DNA of 64,000 bases from Orbicella franksi. Its lineage: Eukaryota. A program made the translations under genes and the position numbers. Positions within the stretch are counted from its first letter, which is position 1, and each line of letters opens with the position of its first letter. Shown in pieces: positions 406 through 63,957 of the stretch. Under the pieces are notes generated by a model, which was not told where the DNA came from, searched no databases, and saw only the letters and a list, made by a program, of their open reading frames with translations. Location: positions 3,410,001-3,474,000 of the forward strand of contig OZ116712.1 of assembly GCA_964199315.1 (NCBI GenBank), read 5' to 3'.

Positions 406-465
406 CTTTAGCCACGCCTTCATCCCCCGCTTTATCGTTACTGTTTTCATTTGCGGCTCCTCCGC
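406..465 (-). CDS. Short exon ([19 protein letters not shown]), internal or terminal
   Basis: TTTTGCTTTCAG acceptor in phase 1; weak GTGATT donor, or stop TAG at 400-398 on read-through. Confidence 0.55.
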
Positions 466-6400: not shown

Positions 6401-9400
6401 AAGAATCGTGTTTATTCATGGACATCCACCATATATTTTGAAGGTGTGGGGGTCAAAGTTATCTTTAGGAAGCCTGAGAGCTATGCTATGTCACGATATT
6501 TTAGTAATGTTTCGCGATGTACAAAATCACCTTCAATTCGAAAGAGTCTTTAAAAGAATAACTGAATAATTTAGAGAAATACGTAAGAGATACCACTAAA
6601 CAAAAAAAAAATCAAGGATGGTTAAGATTGAGAGAGATTAACAAGGATTACATGGGCACCATCCGTGACGAATCTGCATTGACTAACTGCCGTGTCAAAA
6701 TACGAAACAAAGAAATTCAGAGCACTTTGGGTGAGGCCAGCCTTATGTTACATTTCGCGATTTTTTTTTTTGGCGGCATGTAACCACGTTTTCACGATCA
6801 ACAAAGAATTCTTAAAACTTTTGTGACAGAATGGAAAGAAAAAAAAAATGCAACTCGATTGAAGGATCCATGTCTCTATCTATGCTTTTGTAATTTTCAA
6901 AATCTTTTAAGTGGTTTTGATAAGTACTGACTTTCATGGGATAAACCCGCACTACTGTGTGACCATCAGTTCAATATGAAAGCTGTCGAGTAGCACTGAC
7001 AAGCACTATTAAGAAATTATTATGTTATTGTATGTGGATCAAACCCTAGTGTGTGGTACTGTTTAACATGCTGTACAAGGTGGTTCTAGCTTTTAAGTCT
7101 GCGGATGAAACCCTAGTGTGACCAGTACTTTCACGAGGCGCGCGTGAAAAGCGACGAAACGCAGACATCTTTCCTCTCGCACGTTTGTTCGCGTCACAGT
7201 CGCCAGACTAAGAAAATAGAGGAACTGTTCGTAGTCTAAGGCATGTCCCCAATAGCTATGGTACAAAACCCAGATATACCTTCTCCTGTGTCCTTAAGCC
7301 TCTGAAGTTCCGGCTCAGACGCTTCAGAGCTCAGATCCTGTAGGATATCCTCATCTAAGCCAGCCTCCAGCTCTTCCTGGACCTCTGTACTGGGGATCTG
7401 ATCTTCCAAGCCTCTCTCAAGCAACCAGCTTCCTGGTACCCAGCCCTCCTTGGTTTCGCCATCCTTGACCGTCTGAACGAAGTAAAGATCTCGGCCCGAG
7501 CGGAGAACGCGGACTTGCTCTCCACGGCCAATAACTAGTTCATGAGTCTCTTTTTCCAGGGTTTCTTCGGACAAGCGGTAGGTGCCTCCAAGTTGTATGT
7601 TCTAGGGATGAAGGTTAAAAAGGACACAATGAGCTACACCAGGGCATGAAGGGTGAATAAGCCTCCTGCTTAACTGGGGACGTAGTGAAAGGTAAGGCAG
7701 GTGAAACATCGAGTAGGCCCCTCCCGAATATTAGTCCCTCACTCCAACTGCCCCCCTCAGCCGACACCTATCTAAGATGGACGGCCTCGTAAGGTGTAGA
7801 TACCTCCGAGGCAGATACCTTCACTAATGCGAACGCTCCAGCAAGGCATGTGATCAGGCTCATTAGTGGGGGATAGGACGCTGTCTTGCTGTGCTCCGCA
7901 CGCCAATTTTCGTTTCGTCCTCTACCTCACTCAGGAGCCCATTCACAGGCTACTGTAAGTAAACATCTCTCTGAGATGAACACTTCTCTGAAGTGGACCC
8001 CTCCCTCGAAGGGACTCACTCATCTCTAACAAGTCTTCATACTTCTACCCTTTCAATTTCTGAAATTTTAAGAATCACAGAAGTGTCTAGCGGAATTGGG
8101 TATGCCTCCCTCTCAACACTAAAAAGAGTTCACTACATAACTAACGCCGTAATATGATTAAAACATACCAGGCCCATAGGTTCGGGCGAGTCTGGGGGCG
8201 TGATAGCCACGTACTGTTTCTCTACCTCAGCGATCAACCGCGAGTACGAGAGACTGGTAAGAGTTTCTTTGACTGTTGTTACCAGGTTCGTCTCAGTCGA
8301 TGTAGTGCTGGGCACTTCAACCGAGAGTTCACCGAATACAAGAGATGGTGCAACAGCAGTGACGGGCGATTCTGTAAAACGAAAGGATAAAATGGCACCA
8401 TGAAACATGATGAATATTAAGCAGACAAGTCGGACAATGGTCTAAATGCATTACACAGCCGCCATTTAACGTCGGTTTCAAGTAGATCCTGGTTACACTT
8501 TCTGCAACGTTTGCAGCAAACTTCTTCGCAACTCATTTGCCATTTTCGAAGAAAGCTGCATAAAAGTAACAAATAGATTCACTCGACAGAAAGAAAACAA
8601 ATATATAGAAGGCTTGTGATTGTAAGCTGTAACCCACCTTCACCTAAATTGAGCAGCCGTTTGATCTCTCGAACCCACGCTTGCTTAGACCACTCGGTCT
8701 TGGTCTGGAATAACAATGATGAAGAGAAAGAAAGTCAAGTATTATTCTTAAGTAATCCAAAGGAACATTCAATCACGGGATGCAAATCATCTCGTTCTGA
8801 AAAGTTGCTTTTGATGTTGCACGAACAAACATACGTTTTCGCTTCAGCAATTTTAAACTGAAATCCTAACATAACTATTTGCGAGATCTAGCTTCTCCTG
8901 AAACTATGTTTTCACTGTTAATAAGATTATCGTTACCGTGGACAAGAGTGCCACAGGTCGAGGGCTACAAGTTCAGCAATAATTTTAGTTACTGTCAAGC
9001 CTTCTAAATGAAGTCCTACCTTACTTTGCAGGTCTACAAGATGATTTAGATGTTCCAGTTAAACCTAAAGGACACATCTTGCACTTGGGTAGGGAGTTCC
9101 GAAAGCGCCAAACTGATGCCATTTTTCTCGATGCCCCACACCAACCACCCAACCTCCCTCCCCGGCTCCCTCCCTCCCACCCTTCCCTGGTAATATATTT
9201 ACCAGGCTGACTTTCTTACCTCGAAGGTGTGAAGCACAAGAGCACTGGTCATGGAGGTACCAACCCACACCATGAACTGACGCGGTTCACCTTCAACATT
9301 CTCCGTCAGGCCAACATTTCCACTTGTCAACTGCAACACAACCAATCCACACTAATCCACTTCATGCGTATACTGACACGAGTTTTAACAGATTCGGTTA

Positions 9401-12400: not shown

Positions 12401-15400
12401 CGAAGTTTAACAATGGTTACCATCACAGTTTGCCCAAGCTTCACGATTTGTCAAGGCACTGCAACAATTTGCAGCACAGCAAAGTGCAATGGGCCACTAT
12501 AAATTTCAATGAGCGAACCTTAAGATCACTGCAACACTCACTTTTAAACAGCTATAGTCACAAAGAGGTTCTTTTATTGACATTTCGTGCATAAAAGCGT
12601 ACTTGAGAAAATTGGTTACCTCAACAACTGTGCGGAGATCATTGACGTATTGTCGCTCAGATTCAATCATCTCGTTCAACACGAATCTACAGGAATAAAT
12701 CTCGTGTTAGTGATTTCGTCTTGAGCCTGAATTAAAACATTAAGTAGAGTATCATAAACACATAAGACATGCACACGTTATAACAACCAAAGGATAAGAG
12801 ACAATGGTGTTCTCTGGAAAGAGCGTAAGACTGAAAAGAAAGATTGTTTGGCGACGATTTGGTTCAAAATTCTCAATTGGACCTGAGAATTTATTGGGAC
12901 ACTTACTCTCGTTGATGGAGTGCCTCCCTTTCTTTGCCTTTAGCAGTTTTCGGAGCCTTCTTCACATCCTCCTCCGGGGCCCTGATGATAAAGACCCGAG
13001 GCAACCACCCGACTGCTCCAGTGGTAATAACACAGACCATTAAACTCTCCGAGCCTATGTTGTCAAGGACCTCTATTGTGTCTCCTTCATTCGCGGATAC
13101 CTCACCAGGAGCCTTAGGTTTGTAGTTGGTGATACACACAAATCTTATTTTCTCTCCCTGCAAAACCAAAACAAATGCTTGAAAATGTCGACGACAAGGA
13201 AATATTAACTGAGATTCAAGCGCGAAGGGAAAAGGACACATTTTTACATTGTTGTCCTAGAGACCACAAATAGACTTACTTGCGTCGGTATGTCTGCAGT
13301 TTCATCGCTGAAAAAAAATAATAGTAATAAGCATGGGTGTGAGCATAATCATAACTGGTGAGCAAGGGCATTGCAAAAACCCGATCACAAGACATCGTCA
13401 ACAACAACAACAACCATTTATTTGTACTCATAATTTATAATGGAGTTTGAAGGCAAATGTAGACATTTTAGTTCTATTTGAGTCTACGGAAACTGGCGCT
13501 GTCATGCAACATATCAACAAATCGTAGGTTATATCGGGGACCTCTCGTTGCTAACCATATACACGGGAAAATACTCGAATCTTTCATTATGTTATATCTG
13601 TCAGCAAAATGTCGGTTGTTGATTTAAAAATGTTGATTTCAGCAATAGGCTTGATTTGAAAGTCAGCTGATGAAATCGTTCAAGGTATTAAAGTGGAAGC
13701 ATCGAACCCACTCTCAAAATCTTTGATTACTGCTATTTATTAGATATAAGTAATAAAAAAAACTTGGCGCCAGGAAGCACGTGGTGAAATACTGTAGTAA
13801 GCGTGCCTATTTTGATACCAAATTTGTAGAAGTGTGAACTTTATGGCGGCTAAGATGTTCGATAAATTAAGAAGATTTGTACCGCAACATAACCTCAGTT
13901 AACTCTTACTTACCCGTCGTCATCTTTCTTCAGACAAGTGTGACGTACAAATCCGATCTCTGAACCACGTGATACTCTTCTGACCAACCAGAACTCAGGT
14001 CGACTAGTATCCAGTACTTCGACCTTGTCGCCCTTCTTGAGGAATTTGTTTCCAGTTTCCTCCGAATAGAAGTCTTCTATGGCCGTGTACAGTTTGAGCG
14101 TGAGGACCTGAGAACGACGTAAAGGAAAATGTAAGAACACCACAAGAAAATCCCTGAAAAAATCCTTTAGGGCACGTAATGTAGCTTAAAACCTCAAGCA
14201 TTGCAAAACAAAAATGTTACCTCCTCCACTCTTGATAGTCCTGAACTCTTACGAGGAGGTTTTCCACTGTAAAGGAGTGGCCTTTGATCCGTTCCTGGAA
14301 GAGAAAAGCGACGAATATTTTCTTACGCAATCATAAGTGATGGAAAATTTCCCAACAATGGGGGGGGAGCAGAAGTTTTAAAAACCAATATTCAGTTTAA
14401 TTACCCGGCATAGTCAATCGAACCCTGTCGAACTGCATATTAACAGTTTGGCAATCGAACGAAATCGAAGTCACACAGAAATAGTCGGACAATCGAACGT
14501 TTGATTTCCGAACTCAATCGAACGAAATCCAGGGATGGAGTTCGATTGAGTTCGTTTTCCGCACGTTCGATTCACCATGCCGGGAGTCTAACAGCAGTGT
14601 GTCTATTACCCTTGCTATCCTTAGTTACAGTTACTCAACACGCACAATAGATCTCCAATAAAATAAAAATGTTCTAACTACGCACCTTCTACAAAGAGAT
14701 TTGAGGTAGAAGACACCTCTCCGAAGTCATTTTTAGCTACCACTTTGTATTGTCCAGCATCATCGACCTTTCCTTCAGTTATCAAAATGGAGTACAGGTT
14801 TTCTTCTTGGAAAACTTTGATATGCGGGAACTGTTCGTCAGTGATCTCTTCGTCGCCTTTGTACCACGTGACTGCCGGGGTTGGCTTTCCGCGCACGCGT
14901 ACATCAAACCTTGCTGCACTACCGTCTTCGATGGAACGATCTCTCAACGGAGCCGTGAATGACGGTGCTTCGCCTCCTTCAGTTTTTAGCGCTGCTGGGA
15001 TGAAAATGATTGTTACAGGTAAGGAACAGCGCACGCTCGGGTTTACTAGCTTTCTCGGATTCCGAACATAGGTTCGGTTTTTCTCCGATGTTCGTCCGTT
15101 ATTCCGATGTAACGAACATTAGAATCAGACCACTGTAAACACACTACCTTCAGCCAAATTTTTGGAGAAATTTCCCCGAAAACTCTTAACTCTGCTACTT
15201 ATCCACAGATATGCCGAATAGGCCATTTCCGAGTTACCTTGTGTCTCTGTTTCAAAACGACTCGAGTCCTCGTGAAAAACCTTACATATGAAAATGAGTT
15301 TGACTGACATCGAAATGACTGAACCTGTAGGCAGAACTCATTTTCAGATGAATGGTTTGTTTTGACAAAGAGGCAAAAGCCAACTCGGAAATGGCCTATT

Positions 15401-18400
15401 CTACTGAACATCTAGACAGCCATTTGGCCATGTCAGGCTGTCCGTCTTCCTCGTGCATTAGTTGTTACAAGCGCCATAATCATTACTTTCCTTACCTTCA
15501 ACCGAGAGTTTTGCTTGGCAAGCTACTGAACCTCCCATGTTGGACGCCACGCAACGATACTCGCCCTGGTCCTCCACGGTCGCTTTGTTGATCAGCAGTG
15601 AGTAGTTTCCAGTCTGCGAATCTTTGATAAACTTCAATCGCGAGTCCTCCTTCAGTAACTCACCATGTTTGTACCACGTGACTTCCGGTTCCGGGATGCC
15701 CGTTGTTTTGACGGTGAAGTAAACAGTGTCCCCAGCTTTGACGTCACGGTTGCTAAGCTCTTGTTGGAACTCTGGCGCGCAGACGCTGTCACGTGATCTC
15801 CGGCGCTCCATCCGGGCATTCATCTTTTCGAGCTGTTCTTCATCTTGGGATGAAGACTCTGACATTGATTCTTAAACAAAATAAAAACAAAATAAAAACA
15901 AAATAGTCAAACGACAAGGCTATTATTCTTTTGCTCACTGAAGTAAAAGAAAACGCTCTGTGAATTTCGACTCTAATCGTAAGTAGGTACTCCTACGCTG
16001 TTATTTATCGGCAGTCGCAAGCTTACAGCCCTGTGTGATAAGGAGAGTCATCTTTAGCGTAACAAGGTCTTTACCCCAATACAGCATGGCCAACACTGAA
16101 GAAATTACGTCAACATACATTAAGACATCACTACGGTGGGAGAACATTAGTAGCTTGGAAGTCTCCAGTGACGCAAATTGAGGTTAAATTTTCAAGTTAA
16201 TCTTTCATGTTCTATCTGAATATTTCCAACCTGAAACGGCGTCGCTAGTTTCGTGATTACTTAAACTACTAAAAATGTTATTTTGATGTCTCTGTTTCCA
16301 ACCACGGGTTAGTATATGAACACAAAGCTCTTTTCAACTTGAACAGTTGGCTTTTTCCAGTCTATAAGCACTCCGCGTCAAGCAGTTCTTTAGAAAGTGA
16401 ATATCTCAGAAAAGCGCCTGGATGTAAAACACTCATCTCAAAAAGAGTGACAGAAAATAACCAAGAATCACCTACCTTCTACCAACACCTCAGCCGAACA
16501 AGACGCAATGCCCCAGTTATTAAGCAACACGCACTTATAGATGCCTTCGTCGTCACAAGTTACTGCCTGAATGTCGAGGTTGTGTGTTGAGCCCTGTGAA
16601 GACTGCGTGAATCGAGGACGTGAGCGGATCAGGTCATTGTCCTTGAACCATTCAATGTTGTCGATGGGTTCTGGACCGGAAGTCACCTAAACAGAAAACA
16701 GTACGTCAATGAGAAAACTGCTCTCCTCAAAGACAACCTGGCATATGCAATGAGCAAGGTTAAAAACAGCGAACAGTTCCCAGTTCTCGGGAAGAGACAG
16801 GATAGGATAGAACACCTTAACTAACAACTTGAAAGTTACCTACTCTTTTAATGTTTACCTGCAACGCGACATTTTCGCCATCATTGACTTCGATGTTTTC
16901 CAGAGGAGTCACTATGGTCGGCTTGGCACCACTTCTTTGCTTGGACGGGAGTTTCGTGACCGGAGAGCCTGGAGTAGCGCCGTCGGCACTTTCGGCGACT
17001 TCGACTGATTCTGAAAAATGTCAAACATTTAAAGAAGTTCAATCAGAGTATTTTAAGTCATTTTGGCCACGTACAAAATTGCCTTAAATTGAAGGAAACC
17101 TGAAAATAATAGATTCCTAAGATATAAAAAAACCAAAGAGATAGTAATAAACGATGAAGGAACAAGGATGGTTAAGGATGGAGAAGATTAACACGGATTA
17201 CAAACGACGAACTTGAAAAATGTAGGCTAAACCTTTGAGGATGTGCAAACCGTGACACAGCTCCTTGTGGTAAATATTCCTATGACTGGAGGTAATTTGC
17301 TGCATCACTGTTACAACTCTGAAAACTTGCACTAACCTTCTACTGTTATCTTTGCCTCGCAAGACTGTGTCCCAGCCTTGTTAGATATCACGCATTTGTA
17401 CATCCCCTGATCTGAAGTTTCCACCGGAGAAATCTTTAGCGAGCAATGCTCTCCGTCGGACGACATTTTCAAGCGTTTTCCGTACTTTATCGGCTCGTCG
17501 TCTTTGAACCAGCGAATCTGCAGTGGTTGGCTGCCAGCGGCTATCACTTCTAGCTGTGCAGTGGAATGTTTCACCACACTCAGGTCGGTGCATTCTTGAA
17601 CAAATTCCGGTGCCATTTGAGAAAGACGGCTGCAAAATTAAATCCAATGCGAAGGGGTTAGCAAATGTTGTACACAGGTCTTCTAAATTTTTGCAAGACC
17701 GTATACGGAGTGTGGCCCAAAGTAACTTACTGTACATGTTCGAAGCAACACAACAGTGCTCCGGGCAAATCTAAGAATTTGCTGTGATAACCAACTACAT
17801 TTAAGCACAAGGACTGCTCCATACAAAATCTACACCGTGAGTTTTGTATTTTCGTTGTTTCCACAACCTCAGCAACAACAACAACAACAAATTACTTACG
17901 GGGTAACACGCTTCGAAATTTCAGCTTTACTTATGGTGTCATTGTGCAGTTCACAAGCGTTTTTACCACGCACCGAAACAGCAAATGAAAACAGCTTTCA
18001 ACATTTGAGCGATTTGATGCACATTAGTGATCAAACAGATTTTATAAGGTGTAGTTAAGTCAGCATCAATATGTAATAGGAATACCTGAAAAAAAAATAA
18101 TCACAACAAAAATAATAGCACAAAAACAACAAGTACTTACCCACGGTTCATGACTGTTTGAGGAACTTTGACTTTCTCTGTGAAGATAAAAGCAAACAAC
18201 CCTTCTGTTATTTCTCATGATTTCTTTTTCTACCACAACTAGTTTCATTTCCGAACGGAGTCAAAAATAACTTTCTCGTACCTTCGACAAGAACTTCACA
18301 ATCAGTAGAAACTGAGCCCGCAGCATTCGTAGCGACACAGCGGTACACCGCCTCATCCTTGACTGTCACGTTGAAGATATTAACAGCGTGCATTTCACCG

Positions 18401-20570: not shown

Positions 20571-20602
<32 letters not shown>

Positions 20603-47600: not shown

Positions 47601-50600
47601 CTTGGGTGCGATCAATTTTTCCTTCACTGTCAATCCTGCAGAACAAACCGCCTTTCCAACCACATTGGATGCAACACATTTATACCTTCCTTTGTCTTTT
47701 GCGTCACAGTCTTTGATGGTAAATGTGTGCCGGCCATCAGACATGGAATCTACCGAAAATCGCTCATCAGTTGTGATCTCCCGATCAGATGTAAACCATT
47801 GAACGTCTGGCTGTGGGTGGCCTTGCACTTTGACACTGAAGACAGCAGAATCGCCTTCAGATGTGCTCAGATCTTTCATCTTCTCCAGAAATTCTGGTTT
47901 TGTTTGATCTTCTTCATCAACTATTTCATTGACAAAGAGTTCCAACGTACATGTTGCTGATCCAAACTCATTGTGAGCCTTACACTGATATTCTCCTTCA
48001 TCATCCAACTCTGTGCTGCTAAAGCACAGTGAAGAGACCTCTCCATCAAAGTCACTAGTTACACGCTTATCTGTTTCCACAGGCTCACCCTCTATAAGCC
48101 ATGTTATTACTGGACTTGGTGTTCCAGTGACCTTGCAAGAAAGTTTGGCCGCAGTACCTTCAAATACTTCCACGGGAGTGACGGCGTCAGTGATTTCTGG
48201 TCTAATGCCATCAACAGAATCTTTGCCTTAAAATTAAATCAATGTAAGGTATTAAAGCAAAAGTGGGACAAATAAACAGGTTAGTAGCTTACTTAGAGTA
48301 TTTTACACAACCAAAGAAGGACTAAAATACCGTCGTCACAGCATAAGCTCCACGACTGAAGGAGAGGAGTTATATTTTTCAAGCTGAATCAGTTAGCCGT
48401 CAACTACGTTATCTTTTTAAACCATCCTTACAAATGAAAAGGCAGGAACAATCAACCTTGAACGTGGGCGATAAAAATTCCAGCGCCCAAATGACTAGTA
48501 AAGATGTATGGGTTATTGACCAAGTGTGAGGTCAAAATGGCTGGATAATGTGTTTATGGACCGAGACGGAGTCCTTCCGAATGACAATGCCACGAACGAT
48601 GTAAAATGAGAATGTGGACAATAAAAATAATACTTATATTTCATTGGCTATTGCAACAGACAAAAAGTTATCTTGTTTTGCTTGCTTGAGATTACTATTG
48701 TTGTTTTGTTTTGTTTTGTTTTTTTGTGGCACAGTCTGCCACACATAATTTGTGGAGCCGGGGAAACATTATTATAACAAATTTTTGGACAAATTCTAGT
48801 TATCAGTCATTGTTTCTGTGATAAAAGTAAAATACAAAGTATACACAGTACAAAGTAAATGCGGAGAAACGTGCAAGTGTTACCCTTAATGGTGACATTG
48901 AAAGTGCTCGTGTTGTCATCAGTGGTCTCACACGTGTAAATCCCCGAGTCGTCAGGTGAGGCATCTTTAATCGTCAAGGTGTGGACGCCTTCTTTAGCAC
49001 CGATATTGTAGTGATTGCTCTGTGTGATGGGTTCATCATCCTTAAGCCAGCTGACTTTGGGATGGTCAGCACTCATCAAAGCCTTCAGTGTTACATCTTG
49101 GCCTTCTAGAAACTCCAAAGGAATTTCTGCCACGTCTGGGGTCTTTAGAGACTCAGATTTAGGAGTGAAAGACAAGTCAGCGGTACAACTGTCCTTTCCA
49201 GCCTCGTTCATGGCTAGACAAGTGTACTGACCCGCATCAGATGGTTTGCAGTTTTCAATAACAAGAGAGAACAGGTCTGGTTCACTGTCATCCACATCAT
49301 CAATTATCATGACACGACCTTCGTCTTCTAGTTGTACACCATCTTTAAACCATTCCACGACTGGTTCTGGATTTCCAACAACACGTATGTCAAAGCACGC
49401 ATTCTCACCTTCAATCACATTCAAGTTTTGCAGTTTCTCTTTAAATATTGGTAATGCCATTCCTTCTTCAATAAGAACCTCAGCAGACGTTGACACAACT
49501 CCTTGGTCGTTCTCTATTTGACACAAATAGTCCCCTTCGTCTTCAAGCGTTGAATCTTGGATGGTCAGGATACAAACTGTGCCATCAAATGAGCTTGATA
49601 TTCGTTCATCTTCAGTAATAAGATCGTTGTCATGGTACCATCTTACTTGAGCATCAGCTGCTCCAGAGACATGGCACTCCAACACAACAGGTTGTCCTTT
49701 AAGAACTTCTACTTCAGTCAATGGTTTGGTGATCTCTGGCACTGAGCTGACTGGTTTTGCACCTGTGACATTGTAGGTTGAACATAACGATTCATAAAGC
49801 TTTTACCAAATAGAAACAAACTACATTGCATTAGTATTGTTAGTATAGTTGTTGCGATAAAGTGGCATGTTGCCTGTACTGTGCTACATTCGAAGCCCGC
49901 TATGCCAAACTCCCGGTAGAAAATGGCTGAAAAAGATGATACATGGGGTTAGGATGTGGCGAGTGTGAAATAATTGAGTTCATGATAGCGAGGTTCAACT
50001 GTATTGACAGGCACAAAATAACAAAGATGTCTTTAAGGCTTATTATCAAACAACGAAATAGGAAATAACCAATCTAAAGAAGACGAAGAAGAGCATGAAA
50101 TGGAAGTGTTTAAAACACAGGAAGATGACAAGATTTTGAGCTACCTTCAATCTCAACATTGAAAGCACGAGTACCAACTCCAGCTTCATTTGTGGCAGTT
50201 AGCGTATACGTTCCTTTGTCGTCCACATTTGGATTCTTAATCAATAAGGTGTGCAGGTCATCTTTTGAGGTGACGGAAATATGTTCGCTGTCTTTAAGAG
50301 GGACTTCGTCTTTATCCCACTCAATTTCTGGTTTGGGGATACCCTGTACCTTGGCTTCAAGTTTCACATCTCCTCGGTCAGTTACTTCAAAAGGAACAAC
50401 AGTTTCATCTTCAACAAAAGAAGGCCTTTCCAACTCAGACGGTATATCCTCTGGATGATTGTCTACCTTCCCTTCAAATTCAACTGTGAATGTTTTCCAT
50501 GACTTGCCTGCTTTGTTTGAAGCTGTGCATTTGTAAAGCCCTTTGTCATCTGGAGTGGCACCGTTTATGACCAGTGTTTGCACACCCGCTCTGGACCGTA

Positions 50601-53600
50601 TTTGAAAGTGGTTGCTCTCCTGTATAGGTTTTCCATCCTTTGTCCACTCTATTTCTGGCTCTCCACTGAACTGAACCTCCAGTTTGACATCCCCAGCATC
50701 GGAAACTTCAAATGATGGCTCTTCCTCTGTCCTTTCCACAACTCTGGGAGGCGACAATCCTTCTTCTATCTGACCGCTTCCAGCTGGTTTAGGCTTGGCA
50801 CCTCCTATGTTAAGGGTGTATGTCCTGATAGATTTACCAGCTGGGTTGGTTGCTGTGCAAATGTACTTCCCTTCATCCTCAGGTGAGGCTCCTTTTATAA
50901 CAAGCCTATGAATGTCATCTGAAGAAGACAATTGGATATGATCACTCTCTGCTATCGGTTGATCATCTTTTGCCCACTCAACATCTGGAGGAGGATTCCC
51001 TGTAACTTTAACTTCCATGGTCACATCACCATCATCTGAAATCTGAAAAGGACTGTCTAAATGGTCTTCAAAAGAAGGCATGACCCAATCTTCATAACCT
51101 TCTATGTTCACATCAAAGCTTCTAGTGGAAGTTCCAGCATCATTTGATGCAACACAAACGTAAGTTCCTTTATCTTTTGGAGTGGGCCCCAGGATCGTCA
51201 AGGTGTGTATATCTTTGTCGCTACGTACAACGAGATTTTTGCTCTCCGGCAAGGGTTGGTCATCCTTTAGCCACTTCACCTGAGGAAGAGGTTTACCACT
51301 TACCCTCACTTCAAGTTTAACGTCCCCATCAGTGTTAACTTCAAAGGGACGTGACCCTTCTGGTAAGGCAATGAAGCGAGGAGCTTCGTGACCCTCTGTT
51401 ATACTCTCTCTAGAAGCCAAGAGTTTCTTTTTGCCAGGTTTCGTAGTCTCTGGTTGTTCCGATGTAATTTCAAACTTTGGCTCAATGGCGAACGTCACTG
51501 GTTCAGCCGAATCAGCTTTGAACTGCACATCAAATGGTACTTCAACGATGGGTCCACGTTCTTTGCCAAGTGGGGCAACAGCTAAGCATACTTTACAGGA
51601 CTCTTCTCCAGCTTCATTGAAAGCAACACATCTATATGAACCACCATCTTCCATAATGGTCTCCTTAATGGTGAAGGAGAATTTTCCATGGTCAACATCT
51701 TCTTTGATAACAAATCTTCCTTGGTCTTCTATTGCCAGTCCATCCCTGAACCAGTCAACCTCTGGAGGTGGACTACCACCTACAACAGCATTGAACGTGA
51801 CCTCTTGACCTGCCGATGTTGTTTGATTGTCAGGTTTCTTTTTAAAATAGGGTGGAGTGTGTTCTTCTTCTACTAACAGTTCACATTCAGTTGATGCCAT
51901 GCCAAAGTCATTTCTAGCAATGCACTTGTAATCTGCCTCGTCATCAAGCTCCGTACGCAAAAAGATTAAACGGCAGATTTTACCATCAAATTCCGTGCGA
52001 ACACGCGTTGTCTGCCTCAATCGAGAATCATCTTTGTGCCACTCAATTGATATCTCAGGAGAACCAATAACTTCACATTCCAGAGTGACAGGAGAATTCT
52101 CGACAGCTTTTGGTGACTCCAGGATCTTTGAAAACCGCGGTGCACTTCCTTGCGGCTTTGTGGCTATACAAAAATAAATGCAAGGTTCCTTCATATTTCC
52201 ATATACGATGGGTGTATGTCTGAGTAGCTCAGTCCCCAAACAGCATGAGTGCAGCATGTATAAAGTATGACAAGCTGAGCGAAAAGCGTTAGTTGAAACA
52301 CATGAGTACCCTTAGGAATGGCCACCAACATCAGTTACAAGTTAAGCAAGTTAAATCCACAATAGATGATGTCAAGTCCGGATAGCTCACTCCAGATACT
52401 GCAACAGGGTAGCAAGAATGAAGCAACGATGAACTGAATAGTAGTTGTTAAGATACCCAAAGATGCCCTTAATTGTTACCAACACCAGTTAGATTATCAG
52501 CACATGTACTCCATAAAAGACGATTTAAGTCGGAGTAGCCTACATGTACTTCAGTCATTGCATCAGGGCAGCAAGTGCAGTACAGGATGTACAATGAACT
52601 GGATAACAAGCATTAGTTAGGATAAAACAGCCATCAGCACCAGTTACAGTGTAGAGAGTTTTAACCGCAATAAATAAGTTTACGTCTGGTTAACTTATTT
52701 AAGAGACTACCTCAGAGTAATCACTACAATGCGCAATGAACAAAGCACAAGTTGAGGTACACGACGTTCTCTAAGTTAGTAAAATCACCACCAACACCAG
52801 CATAATAGTAGATAAGCAAGTTTCACCCACAATAGATGAGTTCAGGATTGGGTAGCTTGAGTGAGAGATTGCATTAGAGCAGTTAGTAGAATGTACGATG
52901 TACAATAAACTGAGCACTGAGCATTAGTTGACACACGTGATGGTTCACTCAATAATAACACATACTCGCCAGTTACCGTATCATCAAGATAATGTGATTA
53001 TTTTATGTCTGTCTCACTTGAGTAACTTCACTAAAACAATACGCGCGTGAATGACGTACGATAAAAATAAAAACCCTAGTTTAGGTTTAGCAAAACTAAA
53101 TTTTATTGCAAACACCGTAAAGTTCCGAAACTAACCACCCTCGCTAATTTCGGATTTTGCATCCTTTTCCATCGAAATTTTCGTAGCGTTACAACTATCG
53201 CGGGGTCACTACTTTTAGGCAGCTTAAACGGCTACCCTATGAGAGTCAGTTGATTGCAATAAAATACAAATGTTATAAAGTGTCATTGGTGAAAGGAATC
53301 AGAAAAAAGGATTGATGAAAAAAATTTACTGTGATCATAACAGAGGGTCGCTACTTTAAGAACTCTACGGTCCGTTACGGCCAAGTATAGTTAAACAACA
53401 GCAAACACAATTGCAGATTCATTCTATAAGCCTTGACGCAAATATGTGTATTATCGCGCACACACACTAATCATTACTCAACAGGGTTCTGACAAGACAT
53501 TTATAAACAGTGATTGTACAGTGACTGTAAGCAAGCTTTTAAACACAAATGACAAAATAGAATACGTTATTCCACTAACCGCATACATAGGAGGACCAGT

Positions 53601-56600
53601 ATAAAGCATTAACGGTGTTAGAACCTTGATAAGACTGTTATTTTCCTACAACAGATTTCAGTCAAAAATATTTTACCAAGAAATAAATCAAAATTCTCAC
53701 CCTCGATGTTGACGTTAAATGTCCTTGTAGATGTTCCGCCTGGGTTATTTGCTATACATTTGTAAGCACCAGAATCAGTAGGGCCAGCGCCAACAATGGT
53801 CAATGTGTGTTTGTCATCCTCTGCTTTGATGTTAAAATGGCTACTGTTCTTCACAGTTGCATCATCCTTGACCCATTCTACAGTTGGTGTAGGCTTGCCA
53901 CTTACAGTGGCCTCCAACAAAATATCACCACCATCTTCGATCACATTTGGAAATGACGGCTCGTCTGTGAATACAGGAGGCGTGGGTTTTTCCATGACAG
54001 TAAGTTCAGCGCTGCAAGATGTCTGACCAGCTTCGTTTGCAGCAATGCAACGGTATGTCCCAGCATCAGACAGAAGGCAATTGTTCAACTCCAGGGAATG
54101 CATATCATCATCTGAGAGGAATTCATAGCGTGGTTCTCCTTCCAAAGCTGTATCATTCTTAAGCCACTTCACATCTGGCTGAGGTGTACCAGACACACGG
54201 ACATCAAATCGTACCAAATCTCCTTCATATAACTCGATACTGTTCATTCTCTTCAGGAATTCGGGAGCAACAACTGCCTCATCAACAACTAGTTCTATGG
54301 TGCAAGAAACCTTTCCAACCTTGTTAGTTGCTGTGCAAGTGAATCCTCCATCATCCGTTTGTTTTGCATCCTTCACTGTGAGAACAGACCTGTTTCCATC
54401 AAATTCCAATTTAAAACGATAGCTTTCCCGAACAAGCTTTCCATCTTTAAACCACTCAATTTCTGGTTCTGGGAGGCCAGAAACGACTGCTTCAAATCTA
54501 GCTTGGCCTCCCTCCACAATCTGTACTCCTTGAGGCTGGACAACAAATTCTGGTGCATGCATTTCCTTCTCAACTTCAAGATTAGCAGAACAAGAATCCC
54601 TACCACCACTGTTAGAAGCAACACAGCTGTATTTCCCACCATCTCCTATTCTAGACTGAGTTATTGAAAATGTATGAATGCGGCCTTCAGTGTCTATTTG
54701 AATATGATCATCAGGGGCAACGTCTCTGTCATCTTTAAGCCACTTCAGGGTTGGTTTGGGTCTTCCACTGACCTCGACCTCGAAGTCTACATCAGACCCT
54801 TCGACAACCTTTTTATCTTCAAGACGTTGAAGGAACCTCGGTGGAATGACATTTTCTCGTACTGTCAATTGTCCTTCACATGATACTTCGCCTGCCTCGT
54901 TTACTGCTGTGCATCGATAGGTAGCCTGATCGTCTGTTGTGGCACCATAAATAAGATAAGCATAACTTCCTCTCTCTTCATTCTCAACAAACTCAGTTCT
55001 AGATGTTGCTTCCTCAATCACAACACCATTCTTGTACCAGTCAATATCAGGTTCTGTGCCTTGAACTCGAACCTCCAATCGCACATCCGTATTTTCAGTC
55101 ACTTCGATGTCTCTGAGAACCTCCAAGAACGAGGGCTTTTTAATCTTCTCTTGAACAGACAGCTTTCCTGTGCATGACACTTTACCTACTTCATTTGTGG
55201 CAGTAACCATGTAGTCTCCTTCATCCTCTGGCAGAACATCCATCAAAACAAGCCTATGAATGTTGCCTTCGGACTCCAACAGAGTCTCTTCGTTTCCTTC
55301 AATCTTTGCATCACTGTTAAACCACTCGACATCAGGTGTAGGGTTGCCAGAAATTTCCACCTCGAAACGTGCCGTGTCACCCTCTGTTACGGTAAGATCT
55401 TCTAAGCCTTTTGCAATTTCTGGTGGAACAAGTGACTTTTCCTCCTTTGGAACACCAAGCACAGCTTCAAGGGGTACCTCACGTTGTACATCAACAGTAT
55501 GAGATACAGAGATTTCTTCAATGTCATCACTTGTTTTCCCTTCATCTGCTACTTCCTCTTGTTTCTTTGCTGGTTTGACAACAAGTTGTGCAACACTGTG
55601 AACTCTACCAACATCATTTTTAGCCTGGCATTTGACTTCACCAGAATCCTTTGGTGTTGTTTCATGGATGATCAATCTGTGTGCGTCTTCAACTTTCGTT
55701 TCTTCATATCTGTCACCAGGTTCAATGAGTACATTGTTTCTAAACCATGAAACATCTGGTTCTGGATTTCCTTGCACTTGCACTTCGAACTCTACATCAC
55801 TACCCTCTTCAACTTCCACTGGTTTCAGTTCTTTTAAAAACTCCGGTTTGGTCGTAATTTCATCAACTAGAAGTTCAGCAATACATTCTACCTCTCCAAA
55901 TGAGTTCTTGGCCACACACTTGTACTCTGCTTCATCATCTAACACTGTACCATCAATAACCAAGGCGTGCAAGTTTCCCTCTTGAATGATATGGGTATGC
56001 TCATCTTCTTCCACAAAGTCATTTTCAACAAACCACTGCACAGCTGGCCTAGGCATCCCTTCAACTACAACTTCCAACCGAACTGCATCTCCTTCAACAA
56101 CATGAACATTGGTCAATTCTTTGAGAAATACCGGCGCTTTACCACTTGGCTCTTTTTCTATTGCTGGAGGCACAGCCTCAAGAACTTGCTCTGTCGTGGT
56201 GGGCACTGCCTTCACACCTTCATCAACAACTTTGAGCTGCGCACTTGTAACTGCTTTGCCTGCTATATTAGTTATGATGCATTTGTACTGGCCGGAGTCA
56301 TTTGGTGCTATGTCTTCTAGCACAAGCAAGGATGAACCAGGCTCGGTCTCAATGTCCATACCTTCATCATCTTCAGAAACTTCCTCGTCATCCAAAAACC
56401 ATTTCACCTTTGGTTCTGGGCTGCCAATGTACTTGACAGAAAACTCAACAGTGTTGCCAGCATCTGCTGTGGAGTCATAAAGTTTCTTTGTAAACCTTGG
56501 TGGTACAGTGTCCTCTGCAACAACCAGTGTTGCTTCACAAGAGGCTGTCCCAAACTTGTTCCTCGCCTTACAAGTATATATACCACCATCATCATCTCTA

Positions 56601-59600
56601 CAGTGTGTTATAACAAAGGTGTGTGTATTTCCAGTTGTTTGTGTTTCAAACCGTGGCCCAGATTTTAACAGCTTGGTACCCTTGAGCCACTCTACAAAAG
56701 GTGTTGGCTTTCCTTGAACTCTAACTTCTAACCGAACAGGACTTCCATCTGGTATTTCAGTATTCTCTAGGACTTTGGTAAACTCTGGAACTTTACCCTC
56801 GCCATTGACTGTCACTTTGGCTGAAGTAGTATCTTTTCCAGCAGAATTAGTCGCCGAGCATGTGTATGTTCCTTCATCATCCATGTCTGACTTGGGTATG
56901 TTTAAGATACAAGTGTTATCAGATGTCACCTTCAATTTGATCCTGTCACTTTCCTGGACTTGCTGTTGATCTTTGAACCAAGTTATGTTGGGATCTGGTT
57001 TTCCAACCACTGTACATTTTAGCTTCAATGGCTCCCCCTCGGACACTTCGACAGTTTCTAACTGCGATGTAAATTTGGCTGGTATCTGAAGGGGTGATAT
57101 GTGAAGATGTGCTGATGACTGGGCGTCTCCAGCCTCATTGGAAGCCTTGCATATATAATCACCTGCATCTTCCAGTTTGCCGTACATGAGAATTAAAGCA
57201 GAAGTGTCTTCATCGTGGACGAGTTCCAGATGCTTGTCTTCTTTAACTGGCCGTCCATCTTTGTACCAGCTTACATTGGGTTCGGGCATACCTGTGACTT
57301 TCACATCAAAGCGAGTGCAAGATCCTTCGACGATGTATACATCCTTCAAATTTTTGACAAAAGCGGGAGGGCTTGTTGGAGTAACTTGTTTCACAGTTAG
57401 ATCGCAGGACTTTTTGACCTCTCCAGCAGTGTTTTTAGCTCTGCACGTGTATTTTCCTTGATCACTGCAGCGTGCATCCTTGATCTCTAAGCTACAAATT
57501 TCATTCTCTCTTGTTGCATGGAAACGTCTGTGTGGATAAATTGTAATTGGTTGTTCATCTTTGTACCAAACTACTTCAGGTGGAGGTGTACCGGTAACAA
57601 AGATCTGCATTTCCACTGAATCTCCTTCCTCTATTGTCTTGTCTTCAAGTTCAGAGGAAAATTCAGGAGGAATGGACCGTCGACGCGTTGTTGGCTTACT
57701 TTCAGTCATCAAATAAATCTCAGGTGCACTGCTGTCACCTGGTTGAGGAAGCTGAACTTGAATGGGAGCAAAGAGAGTCCCACCTTGTCCATCAAGAGTT
57801 AAAGTGACCGCCTGTGGTTCTTGATTTGGGTCTCTGTAGAAAACAAATATGGCAAACCCCGTTAATTAACAGACGTCTAGAACAGAGTATCGTATCCTCT
57901 TATGTCTATACTGGCATTAACCTAAGTATCCGTCGGAAAACTTAATCTGGCTTTGGTGCATCAAGATAGCTATGTTTACTTTCAACATCTATTATTAATA
58001 GTGGCTTTGTGCTGCATGAGTGTGTGTTCATTTGCTGTGATTATAAAAGAAGTTCTTACATTGTTATAACAGATCTGTCAGTTTGTGGCTCATCAACATC
58101 TGGTTCTCCCTCTGATTCACCAGCTGTATCACAATAAAGGAAAAAGTTGTCAAGAACCAAATCCACTTCTTCTGAAAGTCTTAAAGTCTTCAATGATATT
58201 GTTCAGATACAATACAATACCAAAAACTCAATCTGGGGACATTTAAATTGGTAAAAAGTAGCAGGTAAAAAGACAGTGTTTACGGGGTCAACATTACATG
58301 TTGTGGTTATAGTTGACTTGACAATTTTTTAAGAAATGAACGTTTTCTGTGAATGAATATTGCATCTACAATCATGCCTTTCTCATCTAGAAATCAAAAT
58401 ACACGGATTATACTCTTACTGCAATAACACCTTTCCAGACTATGATTAGCAAGCAGTGAGTGATGAAAGAACCAATGAGATCTGCGAATTTGTAAACTCT
58501 GGTTAAAGTAGGAAGAAGTCATAAGTCATGGTACTGCAGTAATGCAGTCTGACACTTTGATCTACTTACATTCAACATTTAGGTCTGCCATGGACGTTGC
58601 TGTTCCTGCGGTGTTTCTGGCCTGGCACATGTATGTTCCCTCATCTTCGATATCGACTTCCGATATTTTCAAGCTATGCAAATCACCCTCCTTCTCGGCA
58701 TGGATGCGCTCCCCTGTTCTGACCGGATGATCATCCTTCATCCATGCTACCTCCGGCTCTGGAACACCAGACACACGGGCATCTAGCTGTGTTGGCTGGC
58801 CCTCCTTGGCTTTCTGATTTGCCAATGGCATGGTAAACACTGGCGCTACCGGGGCTGCAAAATGATAAGGATCTATGTTTAAGCTTTGCCGAATAAGTCC
58901 CTGCATTTTAACACAAAGTATTTTGAAGTGATTCGCTTGATTTGTGTTCACTTACGACACATTTGTGCATAACTTGCAACTGAAGAGCTGTCAGATAACT
59001 CTTCCATGAACTCTATCACAATTTCAAGAGACACAAAAACGTACAAAAATTATAGGAAATTCAATAATTAACGTATTTTTTCTCGCCAATTCTACTAAGT
59101 AACAAGATAAGATGGAGAGGAATTGCAGTATGGAAAACCATGATGTATAATATCCGGCGTCAATCTTTTCTGCAGAACATTGAATTCATAAAAAGCTTTT
59201 TCTCGTTACCTATACTTGCTGATAAAGTTCTGGTACGAGAATGTTCAACTGAATTAAAATCAAGACATACCTGATGCCAACTGTAGAGGCTCTGTTTCTA
59301 CAACAATTTCTTTTTCAGGAGCAGGAACGACAATTTCTGAAATCTTGACACGAAAGAGAGACATAAGTACTAGTAGACAGATACTATACGTGTAACTAAA
59401 TATGTCCAAATCTTTAGGCCGAGCGTGAGGTCGAGATGTACATGTACAAATATCGACCTCATACAAGTACATAACATTATTTCCCTGTCAATTAGTTTAT
59501 CTCCACCACTTCACTGATTACGTACAGAAACAAAAGAACTTAGCAAATATTTCCAATCCTGGACCTCACGTTGGGTTGATAAAAACTATGTAGAGCTATT

Positions 59601-62600
59601 TAAGTTCATACTTCATCAGGCACTTTGGATCCAGGCTTTGACTTCAGCTTAACGGTGTACTCTAAATAAAAGGAAGTAAGACAAAAACTCTCAGAACGTT
59701 TCTACAGGGAAATCGTTTCACTTCCTAAGGTTACTTAGCCCACAAATAATCAAACAGCAAACACAATCTAACCCCAACCACACAGATTTAAGTTAGAACA
59801 ATCTTTTACAGCATAATATTCAGTATAACATAACAAAACTGCTCGACAGCTTTCATATGAATGGTCATAAACTAGGGTTCTGTTGCAGACTTAAAATTTA
59901 GTATGAAGTTACACCGCATTTACCACGATACTACTCAATAGTTGAATGGTTGCATAACATGATTGACGATTTTGAATTTGTCACTCTAGGCTTGTAAAAA
60001 ATTGTGAAGAAACCAGGCATTACCAGCAGGCATAATGATTTCTGCTGTGGACTTCTTTCGCTGTAGCACTGCTGATGGTACCCAGATTTCATTGTCCTTG
60101 GAGCCATCTGCTAGCAGCCTGACCACCTTGTACATCCCAGGGCGTGACAGTCGATCTAGCACCACTACAGTCTCTTCCTTCCGAAGCAATATGTTGTTAT
60201 GGTCATCTCTGTAATCCTCTAATGCTACGTACAACTCGACGTCTTTTAGGGTGCCAGGAACAAGGATCTCAAACCTGAAATTAAGTAATATTGAACACTA
60301 ATTTAGAAGTAAAGCTCTTTAGGGTTCATCAACAGGTTTGCCCACAGCTTACAATGTTCTCTGTAAAAAGAGCTGTGTAGAATTCAATCAGGCCAAGTGG
60401 TCCGCAAACTGCTGACACTTAACTCTGTTTTCTCTACCACACGCACCGTAGACTAGGAGGGTTGCAACTCCCCATCGCTGGGATACTGGTTCTACACAGG
60501 ATACCACACAGCAGACTAGGATTAAGGACTACCGAGACCTTTGGACATAGATAAGATGCTAATACAAACATGATTACACGAGGTAGCACGTTTTGGGGTA
60601 ACCAACTTCCAAACAATTATGTCAAATACTTACTGGGTCTTCTGACGAATTTCTGCACAAAGACGATCAACAACTTCTTTGCCAGCCTGCAAAGACAAAA
60701 GCTTCCAATCATGACATTTGATGCGGGTAGGTACAGGTGTCTACATTTCTGCTACTTACTGTATTTAGCATAATCCAGTGACTGACTATAGATCATAAGG
60801 ACCCTCTTTTGATGGATAGTTAGACTTGGGAGCACGGTATTGTATGGACTACTTGCCAAAAGCCAATAATAAGTCTAGTCTCAGGGCCAGGGGGCAAGAA
60901 ACAAACTGGTACTTGTTCGTTGGACTGACCAGTCTTTAAAGACGAGCCACAAAGTGAATAACAGATTCTTTGATTAAACGGGTGTAGAAAAATTCTCCTT
61001 AATTGCATATAGTACCTCGAGGTCATCTGTATCAACCCCAGCCTTTCGTCCACAATCCAGAAGATCACCGAGATATGATCTGTATTCTAAAATACGTTCA
61101 ACAGGGCGATCCAGAAGTTCATCAACAGGACGAGAAGGACCCTCTGCCTCACACTTCTGCAACGTTGAAAAGGATAGTTAAAAATAATATCTGAAAAATA
61201 CTTGTCTAATACTAATCCTTATTCCTTGTTCAGCTGCAGGTAATAAATGTTCATAGTAACGAAAAGTAGAAGTAAAACGCGAACCTATCAACCACGCCAT
61301 GTACATTACATGTGCAGAGTCTCTACCAGGCAAGAAATAATATTTTAAGGAAGTCTTAATTATCTCCAGTTTCCATCCTTCTGGTTAAATCTGGAATTCT
61401 CATATGATGGCAAATCCAGACATAATACACAACCAACCAAGTGTATGGTTTTAGTTTAAACGTGGAATGGTAACAAAACTACTGTAATACTTCCAAACCC
61501 ACCTCGAAGAAGTCTTTTGGTTGAGATTCTAAAAAGCTGTCTGAGTCCCCTTTTCCATCACAGAAGGTTATATATCTGTCAAGCTCATGTTCCTTTAAAT
61601 ACAGAAATGCATTTATCAGAGAAGGCTCTTTTCATACAAGATCTATACAAAAGTGTAATGAATGACTTCGAAAAGCTCTAACTCTGGACTACACATCTAA
61701 CATGCAATGAACAGTTTGAATTTGTTAAGACAAACCACGACGGCATTTTAACATAGTGGTTTGTCACCAGCAACGGATCTAAAAATATAGGGAAAATTTT
61801 TTCTCTGTGACATACCTGTAAACTGACAAACCCGACATTTTACTCTTCAATAAACTTAAGAGCGAACATACCCTTTTCTTGAAGACCCTGCCAACTTCTG
61901 AAGGATTTCCTTTACACTTAGCCAGCTCCTCACAAAAGATCCTGCAAATAACCAAATACACATCCGTCATGATATCCACAATTCGAAGAACAAGATATTC
62001 TACCAACTGTTTGAAACTAACAGCCACAAAATAAATAAATCAAGTCTTGTCTTTGAGGCGACGTTAGTTTCAACAGTTGCACAATTAACGCAGATGGGAT
62101 TAACTTACACTTTGTGGAAGAAGAAGATGTCCTCTGAATTGATGAAGATGGTGTCTTTATTGTCAGCCACCTCAGGTGGAGCTTTGGGTAGCTGATAGAT
62201 ATAATCCTGCGAGATATACATGGAAATATATGGGTCTCAATCTATGCTCTCATAGGAGAATCTTTGTTTACAACATTTGCCTCATTAGCATAAGTAATAC
62301 AGTTTCTGATGGAGCCACAAAAACATTAGTTCTGAATATTGAAAGGGTACAGCACGATTAACTGTCCCAAGGAATTTGAGCCTGATCTATTGAATGCTTT
62401 TGTACGATGCGGGTTTAAAAACTCACGTTTTTACAAAGAATATATGAGCTCATTAGCGCTTTTGCCACCTAGAAATTTTGCAGTTTTTGAAAGCGAATTT
62501 CTCCTCGAATATTACCCCCAAAAGAGCCAAATTACTAAGTTTCACAAGCTCCTTAGCTGTTTGTAGTCAATTTGTGTCTAGGTGATGCCTTCTCTGTGCA

Positions 62601-63957: not shown

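Follow-up and report, generated by a model that had tools for sequence, protein, structure and literature searches.

The 64,000-nt window analysed here (Orbicella franksi OZ116712.1, positions 3,410,001-3,474,000; by window we mean this whole stretch of DNA) holds the middle three quarters of a giant gene. We put the probability at about 0.9 that this is one minus-strand coral gene, the ortholog of the published cnidarian "connectitin", known too as the cnidarian ortholog of obscurin/UNC-89, with a full product that reads SEC14, spectrin repeats, linker, DH1, SH3, 76 Ig domains with Pro/Glu/Lys-rich linkers, SH3, SH3, DH2, PH, SH3, Ig, Ig, kinase 1, Ig, kinase 2 and kinase 3. The gene family is real but not new, being already known from a paper of 2025.

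Connectitin has been reported in coral, sea anemone, Hydra, jellyfish and Trichoplax, with a layout comprising SEC14, more than 10 spectrin repeats, many Ig domains, RhoGEF together with PH and SH3, and two to three kinases (Hanashima et al. 2025, PMC12198301). A first reading of the letters alone (below, the sequence-only reading) had proposed an undescribed cnidarian giant scaffold. This claim of novelty falls, as that paper describes the family and includes a coral model, so that an annotated ortholog with the architecture already exists in the published connectitin (PMC12198301).

Extent and model of the gene

All the coding signal in the window fell on the minus strand, which also holds the long open frames almost exclusively. 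The analysis was extended to flanks of 60 kb downstream and 80 kb upstream of the window; below, negative positions lie beyond window position 1, that is, downstream on the gene, and positions marked "+" lie upstream of the part of the gene contained in the window. Exons were predicted with a splice-aware Viterbi gene model with fixed splice matrices and an intron penalty of -12. This model recovers 10 of the 11 introns seen in RNA; it missed the first DH2 exon and placed spurious exons beyond about -22 kb. A version in which the splice matrices were retrained on the model's own output returned 571-1,991 exons, a gross over-prediction, and was dropped. Exons below 57.8 kb, and those that join the spectrin repeats to the exon 64754-63922, come from the Viterbi model only.

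Inside the window the model encodes 9,353 aa, which bears out the in-frame chain of about 9,400 aa first read from the letters. When the flanks are included, the whole gene spans ~122 kb and encodes ~12,200 aa. The domain order in the window is DH1-SH3-(76 Ig)-SH3-SH3-DH2-PH-SH3-Ig-Ig, in frame on the minus strand. Two RhoGEF modules therefore bracket the array, as had been claimed, with 76 Ig domains between DH1 and DH2. The full gene model carries 79 Ig domains (76 + 2 + 1), two DH, one PH and four SH3, i.e., the numerous Ig domains together with RhoGEF, PH and SH3 that characterize connectitin. The coordinates of the features are collected in Table 1.

Table 1. Features of the gene, from its upstream part to its last kinase (window positions; negative values as defined in the text)
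Feature	Position	Strand	Evidence
Linker exon, 277 aa, 3' end	63922..64000, continues to 64754	-	RNA loose end at 63631 and model exon 64754-63922
DH1 (RhoGEF 1), six exons	63631-63274, 62206-62109, 61941-61872, 61592-61503, 61156-61016, 60686-60634	-	RNA joints, open frame
SH3 directly after DH1	60024..60274	-	RNA joints on both sides; ALEDY..WVP motifs in translation
Two short linker exons, SH3 to Ig 1	59661-59612, 59343-59271	-	RNA joints, in frame
76 I-set Ig domains, ~50 exons	14686..58854	-	Ig profile, Pfam I-set, exon model
Two SH3 ahead of DH2	14107-13914, 13157-12907	-	Pfam SH3_2, SH3_1; exon model
DH2 (RhoGEF 2), seven exons	12686-12620, 12291-12188, 11897-11828, 11621-11529, 11410-11318, 11008-10958, 10677-10564	-	Pfam RhoGEF, splice sites, open frame
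PH after DH2	10211-10170, 10037-9903, 9330-9220, 8704-8638	-	Dbl-type PH pattern in spliced translation, read and inferred
SH3 after PH	7280..7472	-	Pfam SH3_2, E 0.0025; exon model
Two Ig between GEF2 module and kinase 1	5266-4988, 967-689	-	Ig profile, 105.9 and 84.1 bits; matches at 5258-4995 and 953-696
Last predicted exon in window	406..465	-	Exon model; gene runs on to kinase 1
Kinase 1, several exons (at least six)	-0.5 to -4.7 kb	-	Pfam Pkinase on exons at -472..-4243
Kinase 2 and Ig, one intron-less 598-aa frame	-11332..-13125 (L001:6875-8668)	-	Pkinase 249 bits, complete kinase
Kinase 3	-17.5 to -20.9 kb	-	Pfam Pkinase at -17.5..-18.7 kb

DH1 and SH3 are spliced into the Ig array

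RNA was mapped over positions 57750-63749, using two poly(A) raw-read runs and two sets of RNA contigs (X10 and X1), the runs being labelled "coral metagenome". Eleven GT..AG joints on the minus strand chain the six DH1 exons, the SH3 exon and the two short linker exons to the Ig exons 58854-58570, 58123-58060 and 57833 onward. Contigs carry 10 of the 11 joints in X10 (depth 182-378) and all 11 in X1 (depth 58-359). Eight of the joints are also present in the poly(A) raw reads, with 1-3 reads each at a poly(A) read depth of only ~1x, while the three deepest in DH1 (61592/61872, 61941/62109 and 62206/63274) were seen in contigs only. Joints connecting the DH1 exons to the Ig modules, whose absence would have divided the chain, were thus found in contigs and, for eight of the eleven, in poly(A) reads as well. 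The single in-frame chain of the sequence-only reading is shown locally by these eleven joints; short reads and contigs document local joins and do not span one continuous mRNA from DH1 to DH2 or from SEC14 to kinase 3.

After splicing, one frame runs without a stop through a 182-aa DH (which begins near 63369, within the first DH1 exon), the SH3, both short linker exons, Ig 1 and the exon with 13 Ig domains. In the spliced translation, neither a stop nor a poly(A)-type end occurs between SH3 and Ig 1. No PH follows DH1: the RNA-supported introns bring the SH3 exon straight after the last DH1 exon. At the upstream side, contigs of both X10 and X1 have a loose end at 63631 whose letters match the final codons of a frame lying upstream (64778-63921), and the first DH1 exon is therefore spliced to earlier sequence. 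The expectation that the chain would still be open upstream was correct: the exon that precedes DH1 ends at 63922 and is joined to it by splicing, and beyond it exons for spectrin repeats and SEC14 extend to about +100 kb.

DH1 was not detected by Pfam on the single upstream ORFs, nor by a six-frame RhoGEF scan of the 497-Mb genome, because its exons are too short to be seen one by one; motifs of a DH can be recognized in the small frames, and the domain becomes clear only once they are spliced along the RNA joints. For the exon 61156-61016, the best PDB matches were p63RhoGEF and Trio GEF2 (E 1e-3).

The arrangement is collinear in a second species (ENA ERZ25073755), in which six DH1 exons and the SH3 lie just upstream of a large Ig exon, with no room for a PH between DH1 and SH3. 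Identity between the two species is ~50% in the Ig exon and 49% in the SH3 exon.

These data bear directly on whether the stretch could hold two or more adjacent genes, a Trio/Dbs-like one (SEC14-spectrin-DH1-SH3) and an obscurin-like one (Ig array-DH2-PH-kinases), connected by rare read-through transcripts. MCF2L/Dbs-type proteins end in DH-PH-SH3, which would suit such a division, as would the local, short-read nature of the RNA joins. Furthermore, KALRN and OBSCN are described as using internal promoters by Hanashima et al. (PMC12198301). Nevertheless, we consider this division very improbable. Every junction from the upstream linker exon, via DH1, SH3 and the linkers, to Ig 1 and the 13-Ig exon was seen, and the poly(A) raw reads show three of the five junctions from SH3 to the 13-Ig exon plus three more within DH1 or between DH1 and SH3. 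X10 depth is alike on the first DH1 exon (342) and on the Ig exons (360-378), with depths at the joints that drop to 182 in X10 and to 58-87 in X1. The uninterrupted frame from SH3 to Ig 1, the order kept in the second species and the non-Trio nature of DH1 (see below) argue in the same direction, and the published coral and anemone models (Am-CON, XP_044173189.1, and Nv-CON, XP_048579266.1) are given as single proteins (PMC12198301).

A separate observation concerns the intron 62207-63273. Between 62260 and 63250, RNA depth, elsewhere a few hundred, leaps to values of 1,000-13,000 in X10 and X1 alike, and the poly(A) reads reach 100-170x. The region also shows many fixed differences and loose ends at 62259, 62292, 62649, 62789 and 63251. 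This pattern suggests a transcribed repeat or mobile element of high copy number that lies in the intron and is no part of the gene.

The Ig array

A profile grown from one domain of a 1,415-aa exon gave 79 Ig matches, all on the minus strand. Of these, 77 fall within 58837-14693 and represent 76 domains, one domain being cut by an intron at 25.6/24.7 kb. RNA supports the entry into the array through the joints 58854/59271, 58123/58570 and 57833/58060. The third of these leads into a 4.1-kb exon (57833-53701) that contains 13 Ig domains. Further along, ten consecutive three-Ig exons of 876-957 nt each, with phase 1-1, occupy 40198-26158. One three-Ig module was found broken by an extra intron (33413-32862 and 32230-31901).

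The best database matches of the Ig exon are UNC-89, obscurin and titin-like proteins. When protein representatives were searched with 1,200 aa of the Ig exon, the longest protein among the matches had 7,754 aa, and cnidarian models appeared only as fragments at 46-52% identity, none of them full-length. As regards Fn3, a profile built from 207 Fn3 domains of obscurin, UNC-89 and titin-like proteins gave no match at E<=1 over 164 kb on both strands, which confirms the absence of Fn3 noted from the letters and sets the gene apart from obscurin/UNC-89 in this respect. The linker exons at 21565-22016, 18894-19442 and 20417-20453 are rich in Pro, Lys, Glu and Ala and are reminiscent of the PEVK spring segments of titin.

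The second GEF module and the kinases

Pfam located a RhoGEF piece at 11.3-11.5 kb, and the start of DH2, at 12.6 kb, came from the genome-wide RhoGEF scan. Once the missed small exon was placed, DH2 and PH could be read through without stops. Pfam gave no PH match on the single exons of 8638-10211, where the domain appears as a pattern in the spliced translation. Searched against PDB, one DH2 exon of 31 aa gave nothing but cytochrome c noise.

The sequence-only reading had described a protein without kinase. This holds inside the window and is wrong for the gene, because the kinases lie just past the window edge: their exons begin ~470 bp beyond the left end. A linker separates kinase 1 from the frame that encodes the next Ig and kinase 2. 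The resulting order, Ig-Ig-kinase 1 and Ig-kinase 2, reproduces the two C-terminal kinases, each preceded by Ig, that are typical of obscurin/UNC-89. An ARR(K/R)W stretch is present after both kinase 1 and kinase 2 (L001:6875-8668; L005:4590-4934), which we take to resemble the autoinhibitory tail of MLCK-type kinases.

In total, three Pkinase regions lie on the same strand, the third putatively joined to the gene, and three is also the number of C-terminal kinases of anthozoan connectitin: in the published description, jellyfish and Hydra have two, coral and sea anemone three (PMC12198301). In the kinase 2 exon (-11468..-13123), the frame ends in ..ENG followed by TAG, and the same bases form a possible donor (G/GTTAGC). 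Given this choice between a stop and a splice, kinase 3 may be isoform-specific or may belong to a separate gene.

The SEC14-spectrin end

SEC14-like exons were found at +95.4 to +99.9 kb. Their shortness puts them out of reach of Pfam; compared by eye with the row of Am-CON (XP_044173189.1) in the published alignment, they agree at ~108 of 119 positions (~90% identity), which identifies a SEC14 domain orthologous to that of Am-CON. This similarity to an Acropora millepora protein, along with the label "coral metagenome" on the RNA runs, bears out the assumption of a cnidarian host, against a bilaterian one, and indicates a stony coral related to Acropora and distinct from A. millepora.

Between +94.8 and +65 kb, the gene model places ~20 helical exons. 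Ten exons were tested, and four of them matched spectrin-family profiles (Pfam Spectrin, DUF7799, Spectrin_7 and Spectrin_SESTD1). The presence of spectrin repeats removes a contrast drawn at the outset, when Trio and Kalirin were set apart as having two DH domains but spectrin repeats: the coral gene carries them too.

Upstream of SEC14, from +103392 to +108373 (L010/L011), there are two long minus-strand open frames of low complexity (292 and 850 aa), in which Ser, Asn, Asp and Lys abound. These frames, from about +103 kb, probably belong to a different gene.

Phylogeny of the DH domains

DH1 and DH2 share 30% identity (E 4e-26) and are interrupted by introns at four common positions (..LRSLAE/..LRTVVE, ..FFFHK/..YGFHT, ..VFKKR/..VILRH and ..KDFFE/..REFWT). 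In the coral Trio, the exons of GEF1 and of GEF2 seem to be divided at the first three of these positions too. The introns therefore look older than the duplications.

We then compared the domains in a maximum likelihood (ML) tree of 24 DH sequences and 209 columns, which is rough, since the genomic DH domains were assembled from exon pieces aligned to a profile. DH1 and its second-species ortholog, DH2 and all the obscurin/UNC-89 DH domains form one clade (support 98.5/97), to the exclusion of both GEFs of the coral's own Trio and of another coral DH. Placing DH1 as sister of the coral Trio GEF1 was rejected (AU p 0.002), as was placing it as sister of the coral Trio GEF2 (AU p 0.001); DH1, which has no PH, is thus not the DH-PH pair of a Trio/Kalirin GEF1. 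In the alignment, DH1, DH2 and every obscurin/UNC-89 DH lack the Asn of the A-N-D motif, which is retained in both Trio GEFs and in that other coral DH. Judged by these sequence comparisons, both DH domains are obscurin-type and not Trio-type, and SH3-SH3-DH2-PH, with its DH inside this clade, corresponds to the module of obscurin/UNC-89.

Among 162 retrieved proteins, 21 carry one DH and none carries two; the 21 are nematode UNC-89 and arthropod and vertebrate obscurin. In three proteins from arthropods the DH lies around residue 1,500-1,650, which made them candidates for a SEC14-spectrin N-terminus; they proved to have none.

The canonical coral Trio is a separate gene on the minus strand (C15:1288001-1316000, i.e., 1.29-1.31 Mb; L016, L017), with two DH domains 18 kb apart that have Kalirin/Trio GEF1 and Trio GEF2 as best PDB matches (E 2.7e-17). 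The genome thus contains a Trio paralog of its own beside the giant gene. It is located on the same contig and strand as the giant gene, 2.1 Mb away, which fits the published idea of a duplication along one chromosome. Elsewhere in the genome, a DH-PH gene present as a tandem pair at a distance of 24 kb (C7:3568755-3571620 and C7:3592671-3595536; L022) gave the genome's best RhoGEF scores; its DH still has the catalytic Asn, and its place in the tree is immediately outside the obscurin-type clade.

The presence of two obscurin-type DH domains raises the question of how the bilaterian layouts arose. A review of 2026 (PMC12812942) places the canonical obscurin layout first in Cnidaria and derives the ecdysozoan and chordate layouts through "genomic rearrangements" that it leaves unexplained. 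Reciprocal loss from an ancestral two-GEF state, such that the N-terminal GEF (DH1) survived in ecdysozoan UNC-89 and the C-terminal one (DH2) in vertebrate obscurin, would do without rearrangement. It suits the obscurin type of both coral domains, and a tree constrained to it passes (AU p 0.21). On the other hand, within the clade the ML tree pairs DH1 with the deuterostome obscurin GEFs, which are C-terminal (87.7/87), and leaves DH2 basal, the opposite of what position would predict. DH2 is up to 37% identical to arthropod obscurin DH, and both arthropod and vertebrate DH domains score higher in BLAST to DH2 than to DH1. UNC-89 and obscurin are both SH3-DH-PH like DH2, while DH1 has no PH and its SH3 comes after it. 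Both bilaterian GEFs may thus derive from the same SH3-DH-PH module, a hint from sequence and module order. Overall, we regard reciprocal loss as improbable. In formal terms, no arrangement within the obscurin-type clade is rejected, six alternatives passing with AU p 0.15-0.66, so that the separate placement of DH1 and DH2 neither favours nor rejects the idea of the sequence-only reading that each lineage kept one GEF.

Titin, obscurin and the published connectitin

The name of the gene is disputed. Hanashima et al. (PMC12198301) read connectitin as a TRIO/KALRN paralog and titin ancestor and state that OBSCN is absent from cnidarians, whereas the DH and Ig comparisons made here point to obscurin/UNC-89. 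Obscurin/UNC-89 orthologs had been reported in Hydra and Clytia as well as in Nematostella (Steinmetz et al. 2012, as cited in Leclère and Röttinger 2017, PMC5253434).

That the gene is a true titin ortholog or ancestor, which is what Hanashima et al. strictly mean by connectitin, and not the obscurin/UNC-89 ortholog, is a possibility to be taken seriously, albeit the less probable of the two. In its favour are the PEVK-like linkers rich in Pro, Glu and Lys and published SEC14 and kinase trees in which cnidarian connectitin groups with SESTD1 and with titin/MYLK kinase-A (PMC12198301). The same source groups kinase-B with obscurin kinase-B. Furthermore, Fn3 is wholly absent, whereas the titin A-band is Fn3-rich; the SH3-DH-PH module and the two to three kinases are as in obscurin/UNC-89; both DH domains nest with obscurin/UNC-89; and the top Ig matches are UNC-89 and obscurin. 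An obscurin/UNC-89-like gene thus fits the domain comparisons better than a titin-like one, and the gene may predate the titin/obscurin split.

The gene bears on the debate about a common origin of cnidarian and bilaterian muscle scaffolds and about the kinship of titin, obscurin and Trio. The case has been in print since 2025, with a coral model of the same gene (PMC12198301), and no new kind of system is involved. The text of that paper puts RhoGEF, PH and SH3 "in the central region" and is silent on two RhoGEFs or on a first one without PH. To this, the present analysis adds RNA proof in a coral that DH1-SH3 is spliced into the Ig array, the SEC14/spectrin exons being joined by the gene model only; two DH domains of obscurin and not Trio type, the first without PH, in an arrangement kept in a second species; and a formal test according to which current data cannot match the bilaterian GEFs to the coral ones. 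These additions are useful for the study of obscurin evolution, and they will not surprise a specialist.

Proposed role

By analogy with obscurin, UNC-89, titin and Trio, the product would be a giant protein that serves contractile (epitheliomuscular) cells as scaffold and ruler of the cytoskeleton. The SEC14-spectrin end may anchor it to the membrane or to the cortical cytoskeleton, and the Ig array could work as an extensible spacer and docking surface. The two DH modules might serve as docking or weak-exchange sites for Rho-family proteins; their catalytic activity is doubtful, both being without the catalytic Asn. The MLCK-like kinases would be kept in check by tails with the autoinhibitory ARR(K/R)W stretch. 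As KALRN and OBSCN do, the gene is likely to use internal promoters or poly(A) sites that end transcripts early.

Comparison with known systems

With titin, the coral gene shares giant size, I-set tandems, PEVK-like Pro/Glu/Lys-rich linkers and MLCK-like kinases with an ARRKW-type tail. It differs from titin in having no Fn3 and no A-band super-repeats, while it carries two RhoGEF domains, a SEC14-spectrin end and two to three kinases; titin, in contrast, has an Fn3-rich A-band and a single kinase.

Trio/Kalirin has the same modules in the same order, namely SEC14, spectrin repeats, two DH, SH3, and C-terminal Ig and kinase. The coral gene departs from it in the 76 Ig domains placed between the first SH3 and GEF2, and in a DH1 without PH.

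The long I-set array, the SH3-DH-PH module, Ig-Ig-kinase, a second Ig-kinase and the loss of Asn in the DH are all common to obscurin/UNC-89. The differences are the two DH domains flanking the array, the SEC14-spectrin N-terminus, the lack of Fn3, the lack of an IQ motif among the features found and, possibly, a third kinase.

Finally, the published connectitin coincides with the coral gene in SEC14, spectrin repeats, many Ig domains, RhoGEF, PH and SH3, and the three coral kinases, and in both cases the genome has a separate Trio paralog; the coral model, Am-CON, differs in coming from another species, Acropora millepora.
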